Positions 44,654 through 58,200 of a DNA stretch of 60,599 nucleotides are shown piece by piece (within the stretch, counting starts at the first letter, position 1; each line of letters opens with the position of its first letter). The notes below the pieces were generated by a model, which saw only the letters and a program-made list of their open reading frames with translations, made no database searches and was not told where the DNA came from. Both the position numbers and the translations under genes were made by a program. The stretch lies in the NCBI GenBank assembly GCA_900088475.1, contig FLMG01002427.1, forward strand, positions 1 to 60,599, given 5' to 3'. The DNA is from Hyphochytrium catenoides. Taxonomy: Eukaryota; Protista; Hyphochytriomycota.

Positions 44654-45259
44654 GGAGGCTAGCTCTGGAAAGAGAGAGAGAGCTTCCTCTCTGCCGCCTT
44701 ACTTGTGGGTCTTCTCTCCTCTTTTCGCGCTTTCTAGAAGAATTCCTCTCCTTCTTCCTCCTTAGTGCCTTCTTTCTGACTTTCTCTCTTCTCTGTCGCT
44801 GTCTCGACACTTGCTCCTCAGCCCAGTCTGCACCTCCGTGAGGCTTCTCGAGGGCAACGTGACGTTGAGAACTAGATTAATGACTGCGAAAGACAGAGGA
44901 TAAGTGACTTTTTATAGAAAGAAAGTGTCTTGCTGTCTGTGCCTGAAGCCTTTGAAGGTGACGCTTCTCCAATCCTCAGATGTGCGACTTCCTTCCTCAG
45001 GTACATCGCTTGGTCACTCCTCTCCCTGGACTTCCTCTCATAAGCTTATGAGCCTCATTCCTCTCTCTCTCTCTTTCTCTCTCAGAACTCCTCGTTCAGT
45101 CTCTCTCTGGCTCTCTTTCTCTTCTCCCCCTAACAGACCTTGCCTTCCAACCTCTTTCGCTGCTTTCTCATTCCTTGTTCTCTTTCTCTCTCTTTCTCTC
45201 TCTCTCTCTCGCTCTTTCTCTTCCTCTCTCTCTTTCTCTCTCTCTCCCTCTCTCTCCTC

Positions 45260-45292
<33 letters not shown>

Positions 45293-48200
45293 CCTCTCTC
45301 TCTCTTCTCTCTCTTTTCTCTCTCTCTCTTCTTTCNNNNNNNNNNNNNNNNNNNNNNNNNNNNNNNNNNNNNNNNNNNNNNNNNNTCTCTCTCTCTTTTG
45401 TCTGCCGCTCTTCCCTTTGTCCTTTCTTATTACGCTTTCATGTGTCTGTTCCTCTCTGTCTCTCTCCTCGCGGAAAAAAGCTCTTCTCTTACAACCTTCC
45501 TAAGATATTCACTAACTAACGATAACCTCCATATTTGGAGTCTAATAAGCGGTAGCTAAATATCCTCCCTAGTCCCCAAGGGCCATGGCCCGTATTTACG
45601 TCCTTCTTTCGTCGATATATAGTCCAACAAATCTCCTTGAGAGGCAGCAGCCGTCCGCAGCCTGCGCCCGATCTTCAGAAATGAAAGCGCCGCCACGGAC
45701 GAGAAGCTTTCTTTCTTCTTCTGCATCGACGGCCGCGCCTGCGCCGCCCAGGATTCCGGGAGAAGCCTCCGTCTCCCATTCCCAGCCCGTGCATAAGCCG
45801 GAGATACAGCCAATACGTCGTCGCAATGAACCAGACCACCAGCAGCTCCACCAGCTTTCAGCAATGAGATCGGCTCTACTTCCAGAGGAAAAGGCGAGCC
45901 ATCCACGGAGGATCAGAGCCTTGATTGTCATCACGCACACCCTTTTTTCTAGATGAAAGAAAGTCGTGTCGTCCATCCACTTCTTCTCTTATCTAGAGGG
46001 GCATTGTCAGGTGATGAGAATCACGGCTCTGATCTTATGGCGCGACCCTGATGAAGTTCTTTAGCGTAAAGATGGCTGCTGTGATGAAAGCTGGCGTTTG
46101 GTTTGTCGCAGCAAAATATTGGCTGTTGGCTTGTATCGGGTGCTGGGCGGGAACGGTTGGAGTCGACCTTCCTCTCTCCCGACCTCTCTCCCTCTCACAC
46201 ACACTTTCTCTCTCTCTGCTCTCTCTTTTCTGTCCGTGTGCCCGCCTTTCTCTATCTTCTCCCCTTGTCCCTCTCCTCCAACATCGTTGCTCTTGCTATA
46301 ACTGTCTTGTCCTGTCCTGCTGCTTCCATCTTCCCCATTCCTTCTGTTTATAAAGATAGAGAAAGGGTCAGTGGTGCCGTTGCAGGTGAGCGAGGAGACC
46401 GGACAGCAAGCAGCCATCATGTTTCTGCCACCAGCGCTGGAAGATATGATGAGGTCGAAGAGAAAAGGGCGGAGAGACAAACGAGTGATGGATGCTGGGT
46501 CCCAAGCAGATGAGTGGGGTGTGAGACGGAGTTGAAGAGAGTGAGGAAGAGAAACGTCCTCTGCCTCTGAAAAAGACTTAAGAGAGCATGTCGTCCGGTC
46601 CTTTCTGGTCTCACTCTCAACTCTCAATCGATCTGTCTTTCAGCAGGAGCTTCTTCTTCTTGAACTCTATCTTCCTCCGAGGAGAGGCGACAGAGAGGAA
46701 TGAGAGCGGGTCTTCTCTCCCTTTCATTCTTCGCGCATCTCTTTGCGGACTTCTTCCAAGAAACTTGCACAACCACTTACTCCCTTCTCCTTACTGCTTC
46801 TTCCGCCATACATCATGAGCCTCTCTTCCTTAAATTCTCTTTCTCTCTAATCCACTTCCGCCTGCTTTTCTTTCTCACGCTCCTTTGGCTGCTTCATGCC
46901 CTCTATGCCCTGGCCACTTTCCACAGCGGCCACACACCTCCATCCCCTACAGGCAATGGTGCAGGATCCCGAGGACAGCTGCAAAAGATAATAGTTGGGT
47001 TCAACTCCCGTGTGCTGGTTGTCAAGGATGATTCATACATCTAAAGCATGCAAGCTTGTGACCCAGAAAGTCGACCTCACTGCACTTATCGTTCCCTCTG
47101 CTGGCGCCATTGTAGCTTGGACTGAGCGAGCTTCATGGCCGCCTACTGGCGGAGTGTGTCGAGCGCTGAACCCGTCCCAGGATAGCAACCTGTCCCAAAC
47201 AAACAGAGCACAAACTGATGGATAATGCCCTGAGCCCCACATCACTCGTCCTTAGAATAGCTGTTACTCTTCTCTTGGCCGATCATTTTCTAAGGGCTAC
47301 GCCTATCAAGCAGTGGTGCAGCTCAGGGCATAATCCATCAGCTGATAGCTCCAGTGATGTCCAGTTAGGATGATAATAGCTTTCTATTCATTTACACCAT
47401 CAGCACCACCATCAGCATATGACCAGTGGCGGTAGTAGAGCTACTCCTGTGGGAGTGGGCTGGTGGCGCATCATCAGCTCATCACACCTGGGCTTATGTC
47501 CCGGAGACGGCCGATGGTACTATCGATAGGAGCTCTAGAGACTCTTATGAGGCTGCAGGATAGTATGCCGAGGTCGAAGCGCCCTCGTCCACTCGACCAC
47601 CATAGACCTGTCAAAGCCGCGAGGACATCAATCAGAAGGGAGGCGGCTTTACCTTGATCCTCTCTTAAGACTGATTGATCCCCCGCCATCACACAGTCAG
47701 TACCTCCAGCCATGGACTGAGGAGCTCCATCAATCATAATCACGAAAACGCCTTCCTGTCACCAGCTTCTCGCCCTGACCTTTTCTCATTATCCACCAGT
47801 TCATCGCGCTGCTACAAGTGTGTGGTCAACGAACCATCAGCTAACAGCTGGTCTCGTGGATGATTGCTGACTGCTAGCTGTGAATCTTGTTCGTGGTGGG
47901 GATGCGTCAAGCTATCGTGGATCTTAGTGGCTCAAAGACCGGCCAAGGAAAAGTCCAAAGCATGCGACATTCCTATCCAGTCATGCCGGCTCAGCGAAGA
48001 ACCTAACGTGCACAGCATACTCTACTGATAATTGGCAAAGTAGGGGCTTGCGAGAAGGCTTGTAGCTCGGAGGGCACCATTGTCCAAGCCAACAACCTCG
48101 GTAGTTCCACATAACCCTGCGGCGCTACTGTCCGTGAGACAGCTTCCAGCTTTGCCACCATCCAAAAAAACAAGCTTCATCAGATTTGGCCATTGACAAC

Positions 48201-49283
48201 CCTGGAAAGTAAGCATCTGATCCCAAGAGCTGTATGACAGTGGTGTAGAACTGCTTTAGCACATGCCATGTCGCCAGTGCCAGTGTTTTCCGGCTGTTAG
48301 TCCTCTTCTATCATCTTCCACAATTGTTCCCTCTTCTCAGGCTCTCTGTCGCCGGCGTCCATCATTCTCCGTCTTTCCTGAGCAATGAGGCTGCTGTTGC
48401 TTGCGGGGAAGTAATGTTTTAGGGCTGAGTATTAAGAAGGGCGCCTGTTTGTCAGTCAGTCTGTCTCACTCTGTCTCTCACTTTCTCTCTTTCTTTATCC
48501 CTCATTCTCTTTGTGTCTCGCTCTCCTTCTCAGCCTAACCTATGTGAGTGCACTATCTGCCTGTCTGATCGTCTGGCCGTAGGCCTCCTGTTGTCTATGT
48601 ACAGCGCTGCTCTAACCCATTCTGCTTAATATTAGACAGGGTGACTATGTAGGAGTAGAACTACTAGGCGACGAGTGGATCAGACGAGAGACAGGCTAGG
48701 GATCCATCATTCCGGCGATAGCGCCCGTTGAGGAGCGTGGTAGGGAAGAGACAAGACAGACAGTTAGAAAGTTTTGTGGCAAGCCAACTGAGAATGATGG
48801 AGCACGCCAACTGATGAGAGCAGATCGTCGCGAGCCCGTCTGGTCGGCAAGAAACGCTCATCATCTTCGCTGGCCAGGGAAAGGATGATAATAAGATGCG
48901 CTTGGCGGAATGGAAGACTTCTCTATTGAATTGTTGTTGGTAACACAAGGTGGGAGCATGAGGCCGCGGTGATCGTCCAGCTGCCAATTCTTGTTTGCTC
49001 TCCATCTCACACGTTTCCTATCTCAGAGCAACCAGCACCCCAGCAACACTAGTACGAAGTCTCGTTGAGGTCCCACGCCAAGACCAAGACGAGTGACTAA
49101 GCCCAGACACATCTTCGTCACAAAGAGCTAGATAACCTCAGATGGTGGGGTCAAGGCAAAAACCCCACCAACGAGAATCAGCGCGTCATACTCTCGCAGC
49201 GTGATCTGCTGTTCGTTTCTCTGCTTCTATTGCTGTTGTCATTGAGAGCCCCACGACTATCGGAAGAGCACCTTGTCTTCAAC

Positions 49284-49998
49284 ATGAAACTCTTGGCTAG
49301 GTCTACATCTCTCTTGTTGCTCGCATTTGCGGTTGAAGGACCGGCGATGGCGGTACAACCATCCCAGCCATCATCATCGGCTATCGCAGCCACAACTGCC
49401 ACCACCGCCACTGATGACGGTGCTTCTTTGTATCGAGGAATGCAGTCGGAGGAGGAGCAGCAACCGCAGGACCTAATAGATCATCAGGGGATGCAAGAGT
49501 CATGGAATGATGAAGCCTCGGACTTCTCTGGCGCCAGAGGACTGCGCTCTGCATCACAGCAGAACCCACGTCAACACTCATTGAGGAATGTTACGCATCT
49601 GGACAATGAGGAAGCCATCTCCTGAAACACGATCAGGCAGGGAAGGTTGTCAAGAAGACTGATGAGCAAGAAGAGGATGACACTGTCGTCGCTATGCCAG
49701 ACGTCAAAGAAGATTTGCAGGAAAGAGGTGATAGTACTTCTTCTCGCCGCAAATAAGAGGTCGTGGACTTCAGTCTCGTGCTCAAAATTGCCTCTTTCTC
49801 CGGTACGGGTCCTCAGTCAATGATGTACTATGCGAGGTGAGAACTGAAGATGGCCGCCATTGGTTTGGAGGCAGCAGAGGCTATCATAGCTGTAAGGCGA
49901 GCCCTTGCGGGAGGAGAGGCTGTCCCAAACGTCGGTTTAAGTTGGAGTGCGTGGATTCTTATATATACTATTTTGAATGTTGGGGCTGCAAGAAGTGA
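49284..49998 (+). pseudogene. Frameshifted paralog of the secreted 8-Cys prepro-peptide
   Basis: It has the same signal peptide start (MKLLARSTSLLLLAFA) as 52635. There is a 1-nt loss near 49618 (premature TGA 49623-49625) and a second frameshift near 49742. The downstream frame still reads QIRGRGLQSRAQNCLFLRYGSSVNDVLCEVRTEDGRHWFGGSRGYHSCKASPCGRRGCPKRRFKLECVDSYIYYFECWGCKK*. Confidence 0.8.
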
Positions 49999-51639
49999 GA
50001 GCCAGCTAGCGTCGTGTCGCTATCTGCCCATATAATGTTGCGTACAGAGCTTAGCCTTAGCCTTAGCCTCAGCTCTCAGCTTGTCAATATTTGGATCAGT
50101 ACCGCCCACTCGTGACAGTAGTAGATCTCTGGGGCTTTGCTGGTGACACCTACCAGCAGAGTGTGCTAGTAGAGGTACTTCAGAAACGTGGAGATGACAT
50201 TGAAAAGGCTGGTAGACGAGCAAACGCTTAGGCCAAACGCTGGAAAAATAAAGCACGAGGAGTGAACAACTGACTCTGCTGCTTGCACGACCTCGTCCGT
50301 CCTCTTGACTGAGGTTCTGCTCACTATGGATCTGTTGCCTCATGGCACAGTGTCTTCGCGCAAGCTGATGCCTGTCCTTCAGGACGCTGATAGGATGCTG
50401 GCGGTAGTGGTAAATGACTTAGAGAGGCGCGAGGGACAGGAAAGGAGGAGCCAAGGCTTGACTGGCGGACTACTTTCAAGCACCAGCTCTTTGTCTTGTT
50501 GGTGATTACGCTCAGCAGAGCAGAGGCTCACCAAGGAAAAACATAGCAGGTCCTAAGGCGTTATAGAACATAATCTGCGGGTGCGTCAGCTCATCCATAG
50601 ACCTACTGCAGCCGACGAGGACATTAACAAGAGGAAAGGTGAAGATCTCTTTCTATCAGCAATGATTCCTAGCACACACTGTCATCAGTACCTTCATCCA
50701 TGGGCGAACAGGCTCCATAAGCTCACAGAGGAGCCATTCTGTCACGAGCACCTCGAGTCTGACCCTGGCTCATGCTCATTCACCAGCTTCTTGGCCAACT
50801 TTCTATAATGTCTCTGCCCACCGAACCATAAACTAAGAGCTGGCTGCGTGGATGATTGCTGTCTGCTACTACCTTTATATTCTTGTTTGTGGGATGCATC
50901 AGGCCATCGTGGGTCCTGATGGCGCCGACAATGACCGGACCGAGCAGCATGCGACACTTTTATCGAAGATGCCGGCTCACGCGGCCCCATCCAGAGATTC
51001 TATACTGCACGGCCTATCCGATGGGAATGCACGAGCTTGCCATGAAAGAGTGGTGGAGGTCGAACCCCGGCCCTTAGGGGCCTTGCCCTGCTCTGGGCTT
51101 GAGGCGAAGTGAGAGTGTCGAGGCAACAGTTTTGAGGTTTCGGTGACTCTGCTGCGGAGCTACTGTCCTGCCGATAGCTTCCAGCCTTGTCGCCATTCCG
51201 AAGGAGGGACCGCTTCATAGACATCTTTAACCGCCGACATCCTGGAAACCACGCCCGCTGATCAGGAGAGCTGAATGACAGTGGTGTAGGACCGCTTTTA
51301 TCAACAGGGCAGTGCCAGAGCCACCAGACTAAATGGTTCCTTCTCTTTCTGCTGTCAGGTCCTCCTACCTTTCTCTTCTCTCATCTCAGGCTCTCTGTTG
51401 CTGGCGTTCATCATTCTCCTCCGTCCTTTCCATCCGAGGAAGCGAGGTTCTTCCTTATGTTCTTGAGAAGAATTGTCTTATAAGAGTAGAAGTGTAACAG
51501 GACGAAGTGAAAAAAGGCTCGCAAGAGCCTGAAAGGTGCGAGCCAACGAAGACCTTTTTGCTGCCATAGAAAGTTCACCTTCGGGACGGTGACTCCGACT
51601 GTTTTTCTCTCTCTCTCTCTCTCTCTCTCTGTTTCTCTC

Positions 51640-51686
<47 letters not shown>

Positions 51687-52634
51687 CTCTATCTCTCTCT
51701 TATTTTATCCTAATACGACTGATCTACCTATCTATCATCTCTTTGCATCTCTGTCCGTCAAGTACTAGGCCACAGCCCTAAACAGAGTGGATCAGACGAG
51801 AGACAGGCTAGGGATCATTTATCCCCGCGACAGGCGCCAAGTCCTGGAGTGTATAGAAGTATAGAGGGCGAAGATGGAAGTGCAACACGCTCTGGTTCTT
51901 CTTCTTCTTTGATGTAGGAGCCTTATAAAGGAAGAGTGGCTCGGTCCTCAGTCCTCTGGCCCTCTCTGGCCTTGCTTGTCTAAGATTGTTGCTCGTCTAA
52001 GAAGCCCTAAAAGTTCCTTCCATGGGTCTGCAGTGATAGCAGGACTGTCTTACGTGAGATCTCTATCATCTCTGTCCTGCATCAGAAGAAAGAACGACGG
52101 TGGGAGGAGCAGCGCCAAAAGTGGATGAGCAAGAGTGCCATGGCAGAGACAGGGAAGGGAGTCTGCTCTCTCTTCTCGAGATGCTTGCCATCTTACTGGT
52201 TCGAGAACAGGCACGCCAACTGAGAGCACAGATCGCAAGCCCGTCTGATCCGCAAGAATCGCTCATCATCTTCATTGACCACTGAGGAGCATGATGATGC
52301 GTTGACAGGAAGAAATATATCTACTGCTGCTGCGGTATCAAAAGGGTCGCCCCGCCGATGCACGTTTAGCAAACTCTCTTCCCTCTCCACTTCAAAACTT
52401 TCCTGTTTCAGGGCAGCCAGCATCATTACTCCTGGTAGAACGTCGTGAGGCCTACCGCCAAGACCAAACGAGTCACTAATCTCAGTCACGCCGGCAACCT
52501 AGGCCAAGCCACGCCAAAGAAATTCAGCACGTCATATTATTGCTACGTGATCTGTGGTCCTACTTCTGTGGCTCTGCTGCTTCTAGTCCTGCGTCATAGA
52601 CCACCCGACGGCTAGTCCCACCGTTTCTTTTTAT

Positions 52635-53348
52635 ATGATGAAGCTCTTGGCTAGGTCTACATCTCTCTTGTTGCTCGCATTTGCGGCCGACGGACTGGCA
52701 ATGGTGGTACATCCATCCCAGCCATCATCATCGGCCATCACAGCCACAACTGCTACCACCGCCACCACCGCCGATGACGGTGCGTCTTTGTTTAGAAGAG
52801 CACAATTGGAGAAGGAGCAGCCGCCGCAGGACCTGATGAATCACCAGGAGAAGAACAACGGCCCTCTTGCATCCTCTGGATCCTGGAACGAGGTGGCCGC
52901 GGGCTTCTCTGGCACCAGAGAACTGCACTCTGCACCACAAAGTCAGCTTCAACTCTCATTAGGGAATGCTGCCCATCTGGACGATGAGGAAGTCAAGCTC
53001 CTGGAACGCAATGAAGGAGGAGGGTTAGAGGAGACTAAAGGTGTCGACGCCATGACAGACGTCGAAGAAGATCAGCAACAAACCGGTGATAGCACTTCAT
53101 CGAATCATCTCAGAGGTCTAGTGGGACGCCAGTTGAGTCATCGGTATTGCCTCTCGCGCTACGGATCGTCACTTGATGAAGAGCGGTGCCTAATGAGAAC
53201 TGAGGATGGACGCCGCTGGTTTGGAGGCAGCAGAGGCTATCATAATTGTAAGGCGAGCTCTTGCGGGAGAAGAGGCTGTCCTAAGCGTCAGTTTGACTTG
53301 GAGTGCGGGGGCGGTACGTATTCTTTCGATTGTTGGGGCTGCAAGTAA
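52635..53348 (+). CDS. Intronless secreted prepro-protein: signal peptide, acidic/low-complexity pro-region, 69-aa C-terminal 8-Cys domain
   Basis: 237-aa ORF with a hydrophobic N-terminus MMKLLARSTSLLLLAFAADGLA, followed by ...HLRGLVGRQLS|HRYC...CWGCK*. Homology to the paralog at 49284 conserves all 8 Cys. Confidence 0.85.
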   Translation: MMKLLARSTSLLLLAFAADGLAMVVHPSQPSSSAITATTATTATTADDGASLFRRAQLEKEQPPQDLMNHQEKNNGPLASSGSWNEVAAGFSGTRELHSAPQSQLQLSLGNAAHLDDEEVKLLERNEGGGLEETKGVDAMTDVEEDQQQTGDSTSSNHLRGLVGRQLSHRYCLSRYGSSLDEERCLMRTEDGRRWFGGSRGYHNCKASSCGRRGCPKRQFDLECGGGTYSFDCWGCK

Positions 53349-54451
53349 GAGCCAGTTAGCGTCGTGTCACCATCTAATGGCATAGTATCATGTACAGATG
53401 TTAGCCAAAGTATCCACTTTCCCGCATCTCAGTGTTTCTAGTCAGCAACGGCCACTCCTGGCCGTAGCAGACCTCTGCCGCTTGCTGGTGATCTTTCTAA
53501 TAAGAGGAGCGTGCTGGCGGAAGACCTTCGCATGAAGGGATGACATTTCAATGGGCTGACAGATGAACGACAGCTTAGGTTAATTGGGCTAAGCAGCAGG
53601 AGTTCCCGTCCTCGTCTGTCCACTGGATTGAAGTTCCGTTCACTATGGATCTTCCCAGCTCTCTTGGCGCCATATGATGTTGACTGGGTTCAGTGTAGAG
53701 GTCTCAAGGCGAGCCCCGAAGACAGAAAGGGAAAGACTGGTTGCATACTGGCGGTAGTCAATGGCTTCGAGAGACTGGTGGGACAGGAAAGGAGGAAGAA
53801 GAGGAGCCATGGGTTGAACCTGCTGACGTTCTCAAGCGCGCCCGTTGTTCTTCTTAGCAAGATGTCATTCTGGTTACTATGATCCGCAGAGCAGAGCCCA
53901 CCAGCAAACTATATTAAGTAGGAGGACAATTGCTCTCAAGGAGATCTCGTTATACCGATTCCCCACGAAGACGCAGTCAATGCCTCCATCCAGAGGGACC
54001 AACGAGCTCGACCATGGCCGCAGACCCTTTCTGCTGTCACCATCACCCCTCACCTGACCCTGCCAGCTCATCATCAATCACCACTTTCTAAGGCATCAGC
54101 TAGCGGCTAGCTCCTGGAAGATCGCTCTGACTGCTAGGAATTAACCTGAAAGTTGGCTGCTTCGTGAGGGATATGTATCAGGCTGTGATGGATCCTGATG
54201 ATGGAGCAATGACCGACCAAAGTCCAGTGAAAAGTCGTAGCCATCTTCATCCTTTAGGTCAGTCAAACATTGCTCTTCTTTCCTCGTCTGCTCTTGAAGA
54301 CTGTCCTGGCAACCATGGCGCCGACGGGCAACAGGAAAGACAGAGCTGCGTCAGGCGCTTTACCTGGGGAGACCAAAAGGAGAAGGAAGAGGAAATCTCA
54401 CGGTGCTCTCCATATCAGCTACTTGCTGCCATAGTGGTGGATGAGCGTCTT

Positions 54452-54484
<33 letters not shown>

Positions 54485-54766
54485 TTTCTCCTGTCGGTGC
54501 TTTCTCTTCACTTCCCGTCTTTCTTTGTTGATGGATAATAGCATCGATGTGTCTTAAGGAGGTTTAAGGAGGCTTATGAGGTGAGAGCTCCTAGGTTGCG
54601 ATGCCATGCCAGACCTCTGGCTGGCGCTACTACCAGTGCCTAGCTTCGTCAGAGGCAGGTGCTGGATGTCGAGACCGTCCTCGTAGTTCCAACCTCGTCT
54701 GCACCGCTCTAGAGGTAGGCTGATCATGCACGTGGTAGCGTCAAATAGATCTCATAGTTAGACAAT

Positions 54767-55196
54767 TTATTGTTTGTTCAGTGCCCGGCTGTAAGTCTGA
54801 TGATGTGGATACAAAGGGCGAGAGAAGACGGCCGCGCTGTCTTTCTCTCCCCTCATTTTGCTACCTCTTTGCTTGCCTGCCACCTTTACCCCGTAAGCCG
54901 CCGAGGACGAGGAGATGCCGTCCCCTTCTGCATACGGCGTCGGGTTCCGTCCTGCTCTTCCTTTCCTACCTTTCTTCTTCTTAGACGGCCCATGTGCTGA
55001 CTGTCCCTTGCCTGACAGTGATGAGACCAGAGCGAGAGGATGATTCTAAGTACAGTCTCTCCCCCTTGGAGACGTAAATCTCGCAGCCATCTTCGTTTTA
55101 GCACTGTCGCCTAGACTAGCGTACCTCACTTCAAAAACTGCCTCGTTGCCGATCCTCCCTTCTCTCTCTGGATTTCTCTTCGAAAGCCTCATTGGT

Positions 55197-55238
<42 letters not shown>

Positions 55239-58200
55239 CTTCTCTCTCCCTCTCCCCTCTTGTCTTTCTCGCTCCTCTCTCTTCTCCCTTTTGCTCTTTA
55301 TGCGTCACGCAACACTTATGCTTCAACCAGTCCCGCACTTCTCCACCTTAGTCCTCCTCCGTTCTGACACCTCTTTACCTGCAACAGAGAGATGCTCCAC
55401 ACTAGGGCTCGCTCTTTCGTCTTCGTCTTTCTTCCACCTTTCTCCGTACCAAGCAGAGGCTGTCAGAAGTGGATTAAACGCCTCTTCAAACTCCTCTTGA
55501 GAGAAAGGAGAGGGACAGGAGGAAGGAGGTTGAGCGTAGATAATCCTTCCATCCACAAAATCTTTAAGAATTATTCGAGCTGCGCGGCTTTCATCTGGAA
55601 GACCTGAACCTCCAGTCCAGAACCCACGAGCTCTAGAGTATGCCTACCGACCCGCCGGGAAAGAGTACGAAGAGACAGAGATTCATATGAGACACGAGTA
55701 AAAGGGATCTAGGACAGTCTATAATCCGACAGCAGAATAAAAGAGCGAGCAACTTGAGAACGCTCAGATAAGAAAGAGACGTCTGACCTGAAGGAGGGAC
55801 CGCGGGTTTACGGGCTTGTCTTCCGCATCCTCTCCCTCTTCAACAATTTTTATCCGATATACCGTCTCAAAGACATGCCGAGGAACACGACTGCACATAA
55901 CAGCGACAGGAGCTGCACAGGGCCATCAAGGAAGTCCACGGTCGAGATAACGGTTCAGCAAAGTGCCGTCGAAAGAGACACAGACAGAGAGACGGACAGA
56001 GTGAGAGACCGACAGATATAAAGGACAGGCAGAGAAGAGAGAGGGAGAGAAAGAGAGATTGATTGAGATCTTGTATGAAATGAACCAATGTTACGTTCGT
56101 CAAATGAGAGTGAGATACCTATGTGATCCCGGAGCTGGTTGATGGGCAGCACTCCAGAGCAAATCATCTCCGCTTTAGAGCTTACGAAGCTGGGAAAGAC
56201 CAGTCCTGGGCAGTCACATAGTAGCACTTCATCCGAGAGGATCAATGTCTGCGAAGGGCACGGGGACAGGTAAACACTCAACCCAAAATAGCCTTGAAGG
56301 AAAACGGCAAGGCTTGAGAGCGACTGCCATATAAGGATCGAAGAGCGGATGCCAGGAGACCAATCCTGGCATTGCAAGAGCCAGAGAAGAGAGGTAGAGA
56401 ACAAAGGTCTGGGAGATGCAGCTAGACAAGGTGGAGTGCGCTTCAATTAGCAGGCCCAGGCTGTAAACCCAGGGACAAGCCACAAAGCATGATACCGTGA
56501 AAGTGCAGACTAGCGACAGTACCGAAGCCAATGAAGCAAAGACGATAGAGTCATTGACAGCCAGAGAGCTGATCTAAACCTGAAAGTGCTTGGTTTTGCC
56601 TGGCGTAGAGGCGACTCCGACCCTGTGTCCGCCATGTGAGTGGGCACTAGCTCCCAGTAGGACGTTGATCAGACTACTCTTTCCCACGTTTGGAAAGCCA
56701 ACCATCCCCACATTTACTCTTGACTCTTCGTCATAGAAGTCTAGATCAGAAGTGCGCATCTCTTTGGCCATCTGGTTGAGCTGCTCAATGAGCTCATCTC
56801 GGTTCAAAATGCGTGACTGCGGGAAAAGAGAGAGCACGAGAAGGAAAGAGGAAGGGACAATGGAGAAGTCGAAGATTAGGACGGGACCAGCTTCCTCTGT
56901 CAACCGCTTACAGAGTCCAAGGTACAAAGGGATGAGCTAGAGGTCCAGCAACAGTTACAAGGCTGCGGAAGACTAACGCGTTGCACCGCCAGCACGGAAG
57001 TGCCATTCAGTTTACGAGTAAGACAGCTAGAACAAGGCAACTGCGAAGAGCATAAAGAGAAGAAGTCCAAGTCGCTAGGACGCGAAGACCGTCAAGAAGC
57101 AAGGAAATACTTGGAAGCAATATCAAAAGATTTCATCCAAAAGATTTCATCTGACAGTCACCTCGAAGTTTCCCGATGAGAGGATCTCTATATCATCTTC
57201 TGCTTCTTCTCCTTCAAGGTCCTCCTCTTCGCTTTCTTCTCCTTCTTCCCCGCTGTCATCAGCCTCTTCTAATCCTAAATCTCTCTCCCTTCTTCTCCTC
57301 TTTGCCTCTTCATCTAGCTTCTTCTGCGAGTTCTTGGCAGAGAAGAAGAAGTGCATAACTTCTCTCTCTTTAAAGTACTGGTGCCAGATCTCCCTGCGGA
57401 ACAAATGGAATTGAGTCACAGGTGGCTCTCCTCTTCTCAACCCTGCTGACGAGTATTCCCTTCTTTTGCTCTCTCTTCAGCTCCGTTCGCATATCTTTTC
57501 GCTAATCACGTTGCCTTCCCTTGCAAGTACAAAGCGCCAACATTGAGATCCCTCCACGTTCTTCAAGCCCTCTTCACAGAGCTTTCCCCTCCTATCGATG
57601 GCCATCTATTCTTCCTTTATTTCCCTCTCCCTCTCTCTCTCTCTCACTTTGCATCCCTCCATCTCTCTCTTTCAACCCTATCCCTTCTGCTTCTCGTTCT
57701 CGTTTCGTTTTCTCGTTGGTACATACCGCTGTTGCGGAGTCAAAAAATCCGCCTTGTTAACTAAGACAATCATCTGCTTCCGGCTGTCGATCTCTTTGGC
57801 GTATGCCTCCAGGTCCTCAGAACTGTCAGAAGAGGGAGAAAATGAGACGATGAGTTCGAAGAAGAAGCAAAGAATGAATGGAGAACAGCCATCGACAGCC
57901 ATATGACGGCTGTTTGCTCCTCTTTCAAGAGCCAGAAAGCAATGATAAAAGCAAAGCAGGCTACTGAGGAAGCTCTATAGATCAACTATCGTGCAACAGA
58001 GCCTTTCATCTGAGAGAACGAGCAATAACGAGGAGCACTGCGGCCACTGACCAAGGAAGATGCGAAAGAGAGAGAGTAGAAAGCAGAGCGGAGAAACGTA
58101 GAATGAGAGAGAGAGACTGAGAGAGACAGGAAGGATGGGTGTACACTGTGTTTAGTCACTTACCGGTAGAAGAGTGGGTTCCTTGCGTCTACAATCTGGA

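Follow-up and report, generated by a model that had tools for sequence, protein, structure and literature searches.

A candidate secreted eight-cysteine protein and its tandem paralog in the hyphochytrid Hyphochytrium catenoides

A 60,599-nucleotide stretch of the Hyphochytrium catenoides genome (referred to throughout as the window) carries a 237-codon open reading frame, gene A, at 52635-53348 on the plus strand. That gene A truly codes for protein is very probable, and its product is likely a secreted cysteine-rich protein. Purifying selection acts on the N-terminus and on the C-terminal Cys domain, as is seen by comparison with a tandem paralog, copy B, at 49284-49998 on the same strand. 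The picture that we favor, although with some reserve, is that of a lineage-restricted gene whose secreted product joins a disordered acidic region to a compact, basic, four-disulfide domain acting outside the cell.

Architecture of gene A and its surroundings

Gene A begins with an ATG at 52635 and ends with a TAA at 53346-53348, and window translation of the plus strand gives a product of 237 amino acids. When the window is shuffled by a first-order Markov model, 1% of the shuffled sequences contain an ATG-initiated frame of at least this length. The gene had been described in the initial annotation as intronless among neighbors with many introns. The frame is indeed uninterrupted; the neighbors were checked in part, one of them being an evidently multi-exon GTPase of the MMR_HSR1 type (ribosome-biogenesis-like). 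An exon of this GTPase at 56574-56927 on the minus strand (Pfam E-value 9.5e-9), opposite in orientation to gene A, marks the nearest recognizable downstream neighbor. H. catenoides has 3.64 introns per gene (PMC5795050). Three Bac_rhodopsin loci, two of which share a contig, are present in the assembly, in agreement with the three type-I rhodopsin genes, two of them consecutively numbered, that the same paper reports. The assembly is diploid, with a SNP rate of about 2.75%.

Residues 1-22 of the product (52635-52700, plus strand) read MMKLLARSTSLLLLAFAADGLA, with cleavage expected ahead of the following Met. Judged by inspection of the translation only, they have the features of a signal peptide, namely an n-region that is basic, a hydrophobic core of 11 residues and small side chains at -3 and -1; by the same inspection, an alternative cleavage would fall between AFA and Ala, after residue 17. 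This N-terminus resembles the signal peptide of the BiP-like HSP70 of the same genome and is the best-conserved part between copies A and B, the first 43 codons being 91% identical at the DNA level.

Immediately C-terminal to the signal peptide stands a TATTATTATTA/SSS tract, which opens a region rich in Ser, Thr, Ala, Gln and Glu. This region, residues 23-167 (52701-53135, plus strand), is a candidate pro-region or permanent linker. Its 145 residues include 10 Lys/Arg and 22 Asp/Glu, for a pI of 4.6 and a net charge of -12. TREL and HLRGLVGRQLS, earlier assigned to an acidic spacer of approximately 145 residues, are both read within it. AlphaFold2 places no secondary structure in these residues (pLDDT approximately 40), and by this model they are probably disordered.

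The remaining residues, 168-237 (53136-53345, plus strand), form a basic domain of 8.0 kDa, with a pI of 8.9 and a net charge of +4.6. Within residues 169-237 (53139-53345), Cys occurs at positions 172, 185, 205, 210, 215, 224, 233 and 236, giving the spacing C-x12-C-x19-C-x4-C-x4-C-x8-C-x8-C-x2-C, together with 13 Lys/Arg and 8 Asp/Glu. Both the spacing and the count of charged residues agree exactly with the initial annotation, and the overall order that it had claimed (signal peptide, acidic spacer, basic eight-Cys domain) likewise matches by translation and composition, the signal part being judged by eye. The AlphaFold and Foldseek analysis suggested there was carried out, but the models proved too poor to use, with a pLDDT of 52 for the domain, modeled from a two-sequence alignment of A and B, and of 40 for the full protein. 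The sole feature to recur among them is a beta-hairpin in the last 18 or so residues. Foldseek, queried against PDB with the Cys-domain model (unreliable, at the pLDDT just given), returned no match at E<=1e-3. Rows for midkine and sclerostin, with E-values of 2-5, were set aside because of the unreliability of that model.

Eight Cys residues within 65 positions, with a terminal CxxC, might also be read as the mark of an intracellular protein in which they hold zinc or another metal, the hydrophobic N-terminus then being no signal peptide at all. We regard this as extremely improbable. Only one CxxC pair is present, no zinc-finger family is matched at E<=10, and the N-terminus combines the classic n/h/c layout of a signal peptide with the highest conservation found between the two copies.

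Several features of the surrounding DNA may be recorded here. Microsatellites rich in (CT)n lie at 48445-48540, 51590-51710, 54430-54515 and 55180-55250, and for the tract near 51.6 kb, over 100 matches with 75-96% identity occur on other contigs. Across the whole window, such tracts create long but spurious Leu-Ser ORFs on either strand. An assembly gap at approximately 45390-45440, visible as a run of N and as X in the ORFs at 44904-45559, falls in low-complexity Leu-Ser sequence that lies upstream of the duplication described below.

A tandem paralog and constraint on the coding sequence

A six-frame search of the genome (4759 records, 61.0 Mb) revealed one relative of gene A, on the same strand and 3.35 kb upstream. 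Identity is 68% between residues 2-120 of gene A and 49284-49616, and 66% between residues 164-237 and 49765-49992; copy B thus conserves both the N-terminal part and the Cys domain, although in different frames. When the domain alone served as the query, A and B were the only sequences recovered. The genome-wide search for the domain that the initial annotation had called for thus yields copy B as the sole relative, and the term 'orphan' used there stands in one sense only. No match was found outside the genome, but gene A is not single-copy, because its paralog lies at 49284-49998. Repeat pairs D3-D12, spaced 2992-3405 nt apart, define a tandem duplication with units of approximately 3.0-3.4 kb, at approximately 47.7-50.7 kb and 50.7-54.0 kb (47700-54000 together), each of which holds one gene copy. 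The A/B duplication of approximately 3.3 kb is old.

The signal peptide, the greater part of the acidic region and every one of the eight Cys survive in copy B, where the first spacing is x13 and the penultimate one x9. Its N-terminal part spans 49284-49622, and its Cys domain occupies an open frame at approximately 49738-49998. Three lesions are found relative to gene A: a 1-nt gap at approximately 49616, leading to a TGA at 49623; a TAA at 49754-49756, which sits in the frame homologous to that of A; and a 1-nt gap at approximately 49764. All three lie inside a linker of approximately 150 nt, which is also the fast-evolving stretch. This confinement of the lesions to the linker, between flanking parts that are constrained and have in-frame indels, suggests that copy B either was inactivated recently or has had its linker intronized, to be spliced out. 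Thirteen frame-compatible GT-AG introns are possible in copy B, none with a donor like those of the genome (GTAGGT, GTGAGC and GTACTG). In all comparisons, copy B was used piecewise, by reference.

As depicted by a global alignment of the two units, the N-terminal part of the ORF and the Cys domain are conserved at 0.75-0.85 identity with few gaps, whereas identity falls to 0.5-0.7, with many gaps, in the flanks and in the final third of the acidic region. For the Cys core, dN/dS between A and B is 0.20 over 50 ungapped codons (Fisher p = 1.5e-4), reflecting 14 synonymous changes at 32 sites and 14 non-synonymous changes at 118 sites. The same columns read in the two other frames give values of 1.45 and 0.73, neither of them significant. 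Third codon positions account for 16 of the 28 differences in the core. Across the N-terminal 110 codons, omega is 0.45. The six indels within the N-terminal part and the Cys domain are without exception multiples of three; of the 16 flanking ones, two are. With this same omega and in-frame indels only, the N-terminal two-thirds of the acidic region are under some constraint, while the C-terminal third has diverged to the level of the flanks. In a simulation of neutral change, 1.2% of trials at the observed 19% divergence kept all eight Cys, as did close to none at the divergence of the flanks.

It is because of these four mutually independent lines of evidence, namely the conservation islands, the frame-specific dN/dS, the in-frame indels and the Cys retention, that we regard gene A as coding. 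Codon usage was dropped as evidence either way. The gene A frame has the best total codon log-odds among the six, and its synonymous codon usage is not separable from that of non-coding DNA; the other long ORFs of the window score alike, as do two of the seven housekeeping genes used as references, which are also negative.

A skeptic might hold that no functional gene is present, gene A being a chance or decaying frame in duplicated intergenic DNA that owes its likeness to copy B to recent duplication or gene conversion. The lack of homologs and of a self-match in the protein collections, a codon usage like that of non-coding DNA, the broken state of copy B and the low confidence of the structure predictions would all sit well with such a view. 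It is nevertheless improbable in light of the alignment. The synonymous excess is specific to one frame, every indel in the ORF parts keeps the frame, as against two of the 16 in the flanks, and the eight Cys have been kept against neutral expectation. Moreover, conservation peaks on the ORF parts, the length of the ORF is itself improbable, and differences biased toward third positions are not a product of gene conversion.

Conservation also extends to either side of the coding sequence. Upstream, approximately 190 nt at 52446-52634 (plus strand) are 72-73% identical between A and B in the unit alignment, compared with a flank average of 50-65%. Past the stop, a block at 53349-53406 (plus strand) corresponds to repeat D5, with 73% identity over 64 nt. 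Such blocks are as expected for a promoter with 5' UTR and for a 3' UTR, and we interpret the first as the probable promoter and 5' UTR of gene A and the second as a probable 3' UTR element common to both copies. The first 30 or so nucleotides past the stop (GAGCCAG.TAGCGTCGTGTC) are approximately 90% identical when 53349-53406 is set against 49999-50056, well above the flank average; this stretch may be a regulatory or processing element of the 3' UTR.

Searches for relatives

Neither the whole protein nor its Cys domain gave any credible match in Pfam-A at E<=10. The best rows were DUF6484 (E-value 0.16, 13 bits), which covers the signal and a Thr-Ala tract, and Cytomega_gL (E-value 0.11, 12 bits), both far under the cut-offs of their models. 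A word-indexed homology search with the full protein and with a 79-residue C-terminal piece gave no match. An exhaustive phmmer search of 1.84 billion representative proteins returned no sequence at E<=1e-3, not even a self-match, which implies that gene A is missing from the public protein sets covered. ESM Atlas, queried with the whole protein and with residues 160-237, returned a best value of 0.76 or nothing usable. Against PDB sequences, a profile built from A and B had a best E-value of 0.15; its rows, the knob of a bovine antibody and repeats from beta-propellers, were judged to be chance. Metagenomes were scanned twice, with peptide patterns in one case and in the other with a degenerate DNA pattern for the block CKASxCGRRGCPKR, and neither scan found a match. 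A degenerate DNA pattern for the Cys spacing, run against the H. catenoides genome, was swamped by CTG/CAG repeats and was of no use.

These blank searches show that detectable kin are truly lacking among predicted proteins, a statement that does not extend to the unannotated genomes of close relatives. A family that it did not recognize had been proposed in the initial annotation, and that view is upheld, in that a match to a known domain was sought in Pfam, phmmer, ESM Atlas, PDB and metagenomes and none was found. The defensin/gamma-thionin (CS-alpha-beta) signature, CxxxC...CxC, is absent from the spacing of gene A, and no Pfam match to such families exists. Profiles for PcF and for the elicitins, which have six-Cys patterns, leave gene A unmatched at E<=10. 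Two further candidates were tried and rejected. A transposon or repeat origin was discarded because, within 48-55 kb and besides A and B themselves, only the (CT)n microsatellite recurs elsewhere in the genome; a non-coding RNA was discarded in the absence of any Rfam match in 47-55 kb. Genes A and B are probably a new, lineage-specific sequence family of a well-known general kind, that of the secreted Cys-rich proteins.

One established class deserves separate mention, the host-translocated effectors of the oomycete RxLR-dEER type. Gene A has RELH and copy B has RGLR in aligned positions, and DDEE (DNEE) follows 17 residues on, as part of an acidic DDEE...LLER stretch. RxLR effectors are typically Cys-poor. 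The motif in gene A (residues 95-98) is RELH rather than RxLR and lies approximately 73 residues past the cleavage site, where the usual window is 30-60, and RGLR occurs only in the broken copy. In addition, H. catenoides is reported to be a free-living saprotroph without the effector families of oomycetes (no elicitins or NPP1) and with a single RxLR candidate (PMC5795050). Membership in this class is, consequently, very hard to credit.

Export, processing and comparison with known systems

Under the favored explanation, that of a secreted protein with a compact four-disulfide domain, the product would enter the secretory pathway by means of a cleavable N-terminal signal peptide, in keeping with what is generally known of secretory proteins. 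The eight invariant Cys would most likely be oxidized to four disulfides, making of the domain a stable cationic binding module with an extracellular site of action. During export, the acidic region would mask the charge of the Cys domain. More speculatively, it may be removed near the conserved RGL/RQL that precedes the first Cys, and the cationic peptide of approximately 8 kDa left behind would act on another surface, such as that of a microbial competitor or the organism's own wall.

The anionic pro-region balances the cationic C-terminal 70 residues (the peptide that would begin after RQL), with the values given above, as in prepro-peptides, and this split between acidic pro-region and basic mature part fits the logic of prepro-defensins. 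RGL at residue 160 and RQL at residue 165 lie upstream of the Cys domain, 138-145 residues past the signal peptide; an RGL shortly before the first Cys is common to A and B, with RQL additionally present in A. Nevertheless, RxL occurs four times in the 237 residues, approximately its chance frequency. No dibasic or furin-like (RxxR) convertase site is found at the pro/mature boundary, the dibasic pairs of the protein being restricted to positions 54, 193, 212 and 217. Diatom secretory proteins are known to lose propeptides ending in RXL to an unidentified protease (PMC5525289). The case for release of a peptide is weakened because the diatom RXL domain is only some 30 residues long, because RxL is near chance here and because the boundary has no dibasic site. 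Release as a processed cationic peptide is a tentative proposal, an antimicrobial or toxin-like activity specifically is unlikely, and the pheromone role also named in the initial annotation is speculative. A similarly low rating is given to the most ambitious version, in which A and B represent an unseen four-disulfide fold family confined to hyphochytrids, with an acidic propiece cut at Arg-x-Leu by a stramenopile RXL protease and a role in antimicrobial defense or signaling.

Rated next after the best explanation, and to be taken seriously even if we doubt it, is an unprocessed secreted or wall glycoprotein, in which the acidic region would be a permanent, mucin-like, O-glycosylated stalk and the Cys domain a binding module, for cell-wall polysaccharide or a substrate, for instance, with no small peptide set free. 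The tract that follows directly on the signal peptide, the 145 residues without predicted structure and a boundary without a recognizable protease site are all in its favor, and the N-terminal two-thirds of the acidic region are more constrained than a throw-away spacer should be. However, no carbohydrate-binding or adhesion family appears in Pfam at E<=10, the C-terminal third of the acidic region evolves at the rate of the flanks, and an acidic region followed by a basic domain is the classic layout of propiece and mature peptide.

If real and secreted, the product of gene A is among very few candidate secreted peptides from the hyphochytrids, a barely studied sister lineage of the oomycetes for which published genome analysis is limited to CAZymes and known effector families. 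It would then represent a new Cys-rich sequence family and possibly a new fold. Should RxL processing prove true, it would hint at a stramenopile propeptide mechanism both older and broader than the silica proteins of diatoms, and gene A would offer a tractable substrate for finding the RXL protease. As it stands, gene A is an ordinary lineage-specific gene of a kind plentiful in every protist genome, and its chief practical value is to supply a gene model that the annotation of H. catenoides lacks.

Three known systems invite comparison. Overall, the product of gene A is most like a prepro-type, secreted, Cys-rich peptide, and it belongs to none of the known families compared. The RXL proteins of diatoms (silaffins, cingulins and silicanin-1) are, like A and B, of stramenopile origin, and they lose a segment that ends in Arg-x-Leu; in A, RGL and RQL, and in B, RGL lie a few residues ahead of the first Cys. 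Unlike the situation in gene A, where the corresponding segment would be 138-145 residues long, their RXL domain sits directly behind the signal peptide; moreover, the host of gene A is neither a diatom nor a silicifying organism, and its RxL count is close to chance. Precursors of the prepro-defensin type share with gene A a signal peptide (a putative one here), an anionic propiece (-12 here), a small, cationic, Cys-rich part (+4.6 and approximately 8 kDa here) and an even number of Cys. Gene A differs from the defensins and thionins in having neither CxxxC/CxC nor CC signatures and no family match at E<=10, and from prepro-defensins in general in having a pro-region twice the length of the mature part and no dibasic processing site.

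The PcF/SCR proteins and elicitins of oomycetes differ from gene A in that they have no counterpart of its 145-residue acidic region and show no profile similarity to it; nor did any relative emerge from the exhaustive protein search, the collections covered by which should include oomycete proteomes. Like gene A, these are lineage-restricted proteins of stramenopile 'pseudofungi' that combine a signal peptide (putative in gene A) with a Cys-rich domain and occur as tandem duplicates. Lineage-specific, small, secreted, Cys-rich proteins that come as tandem pairs are widespread among oomycetes, fungi and protists.
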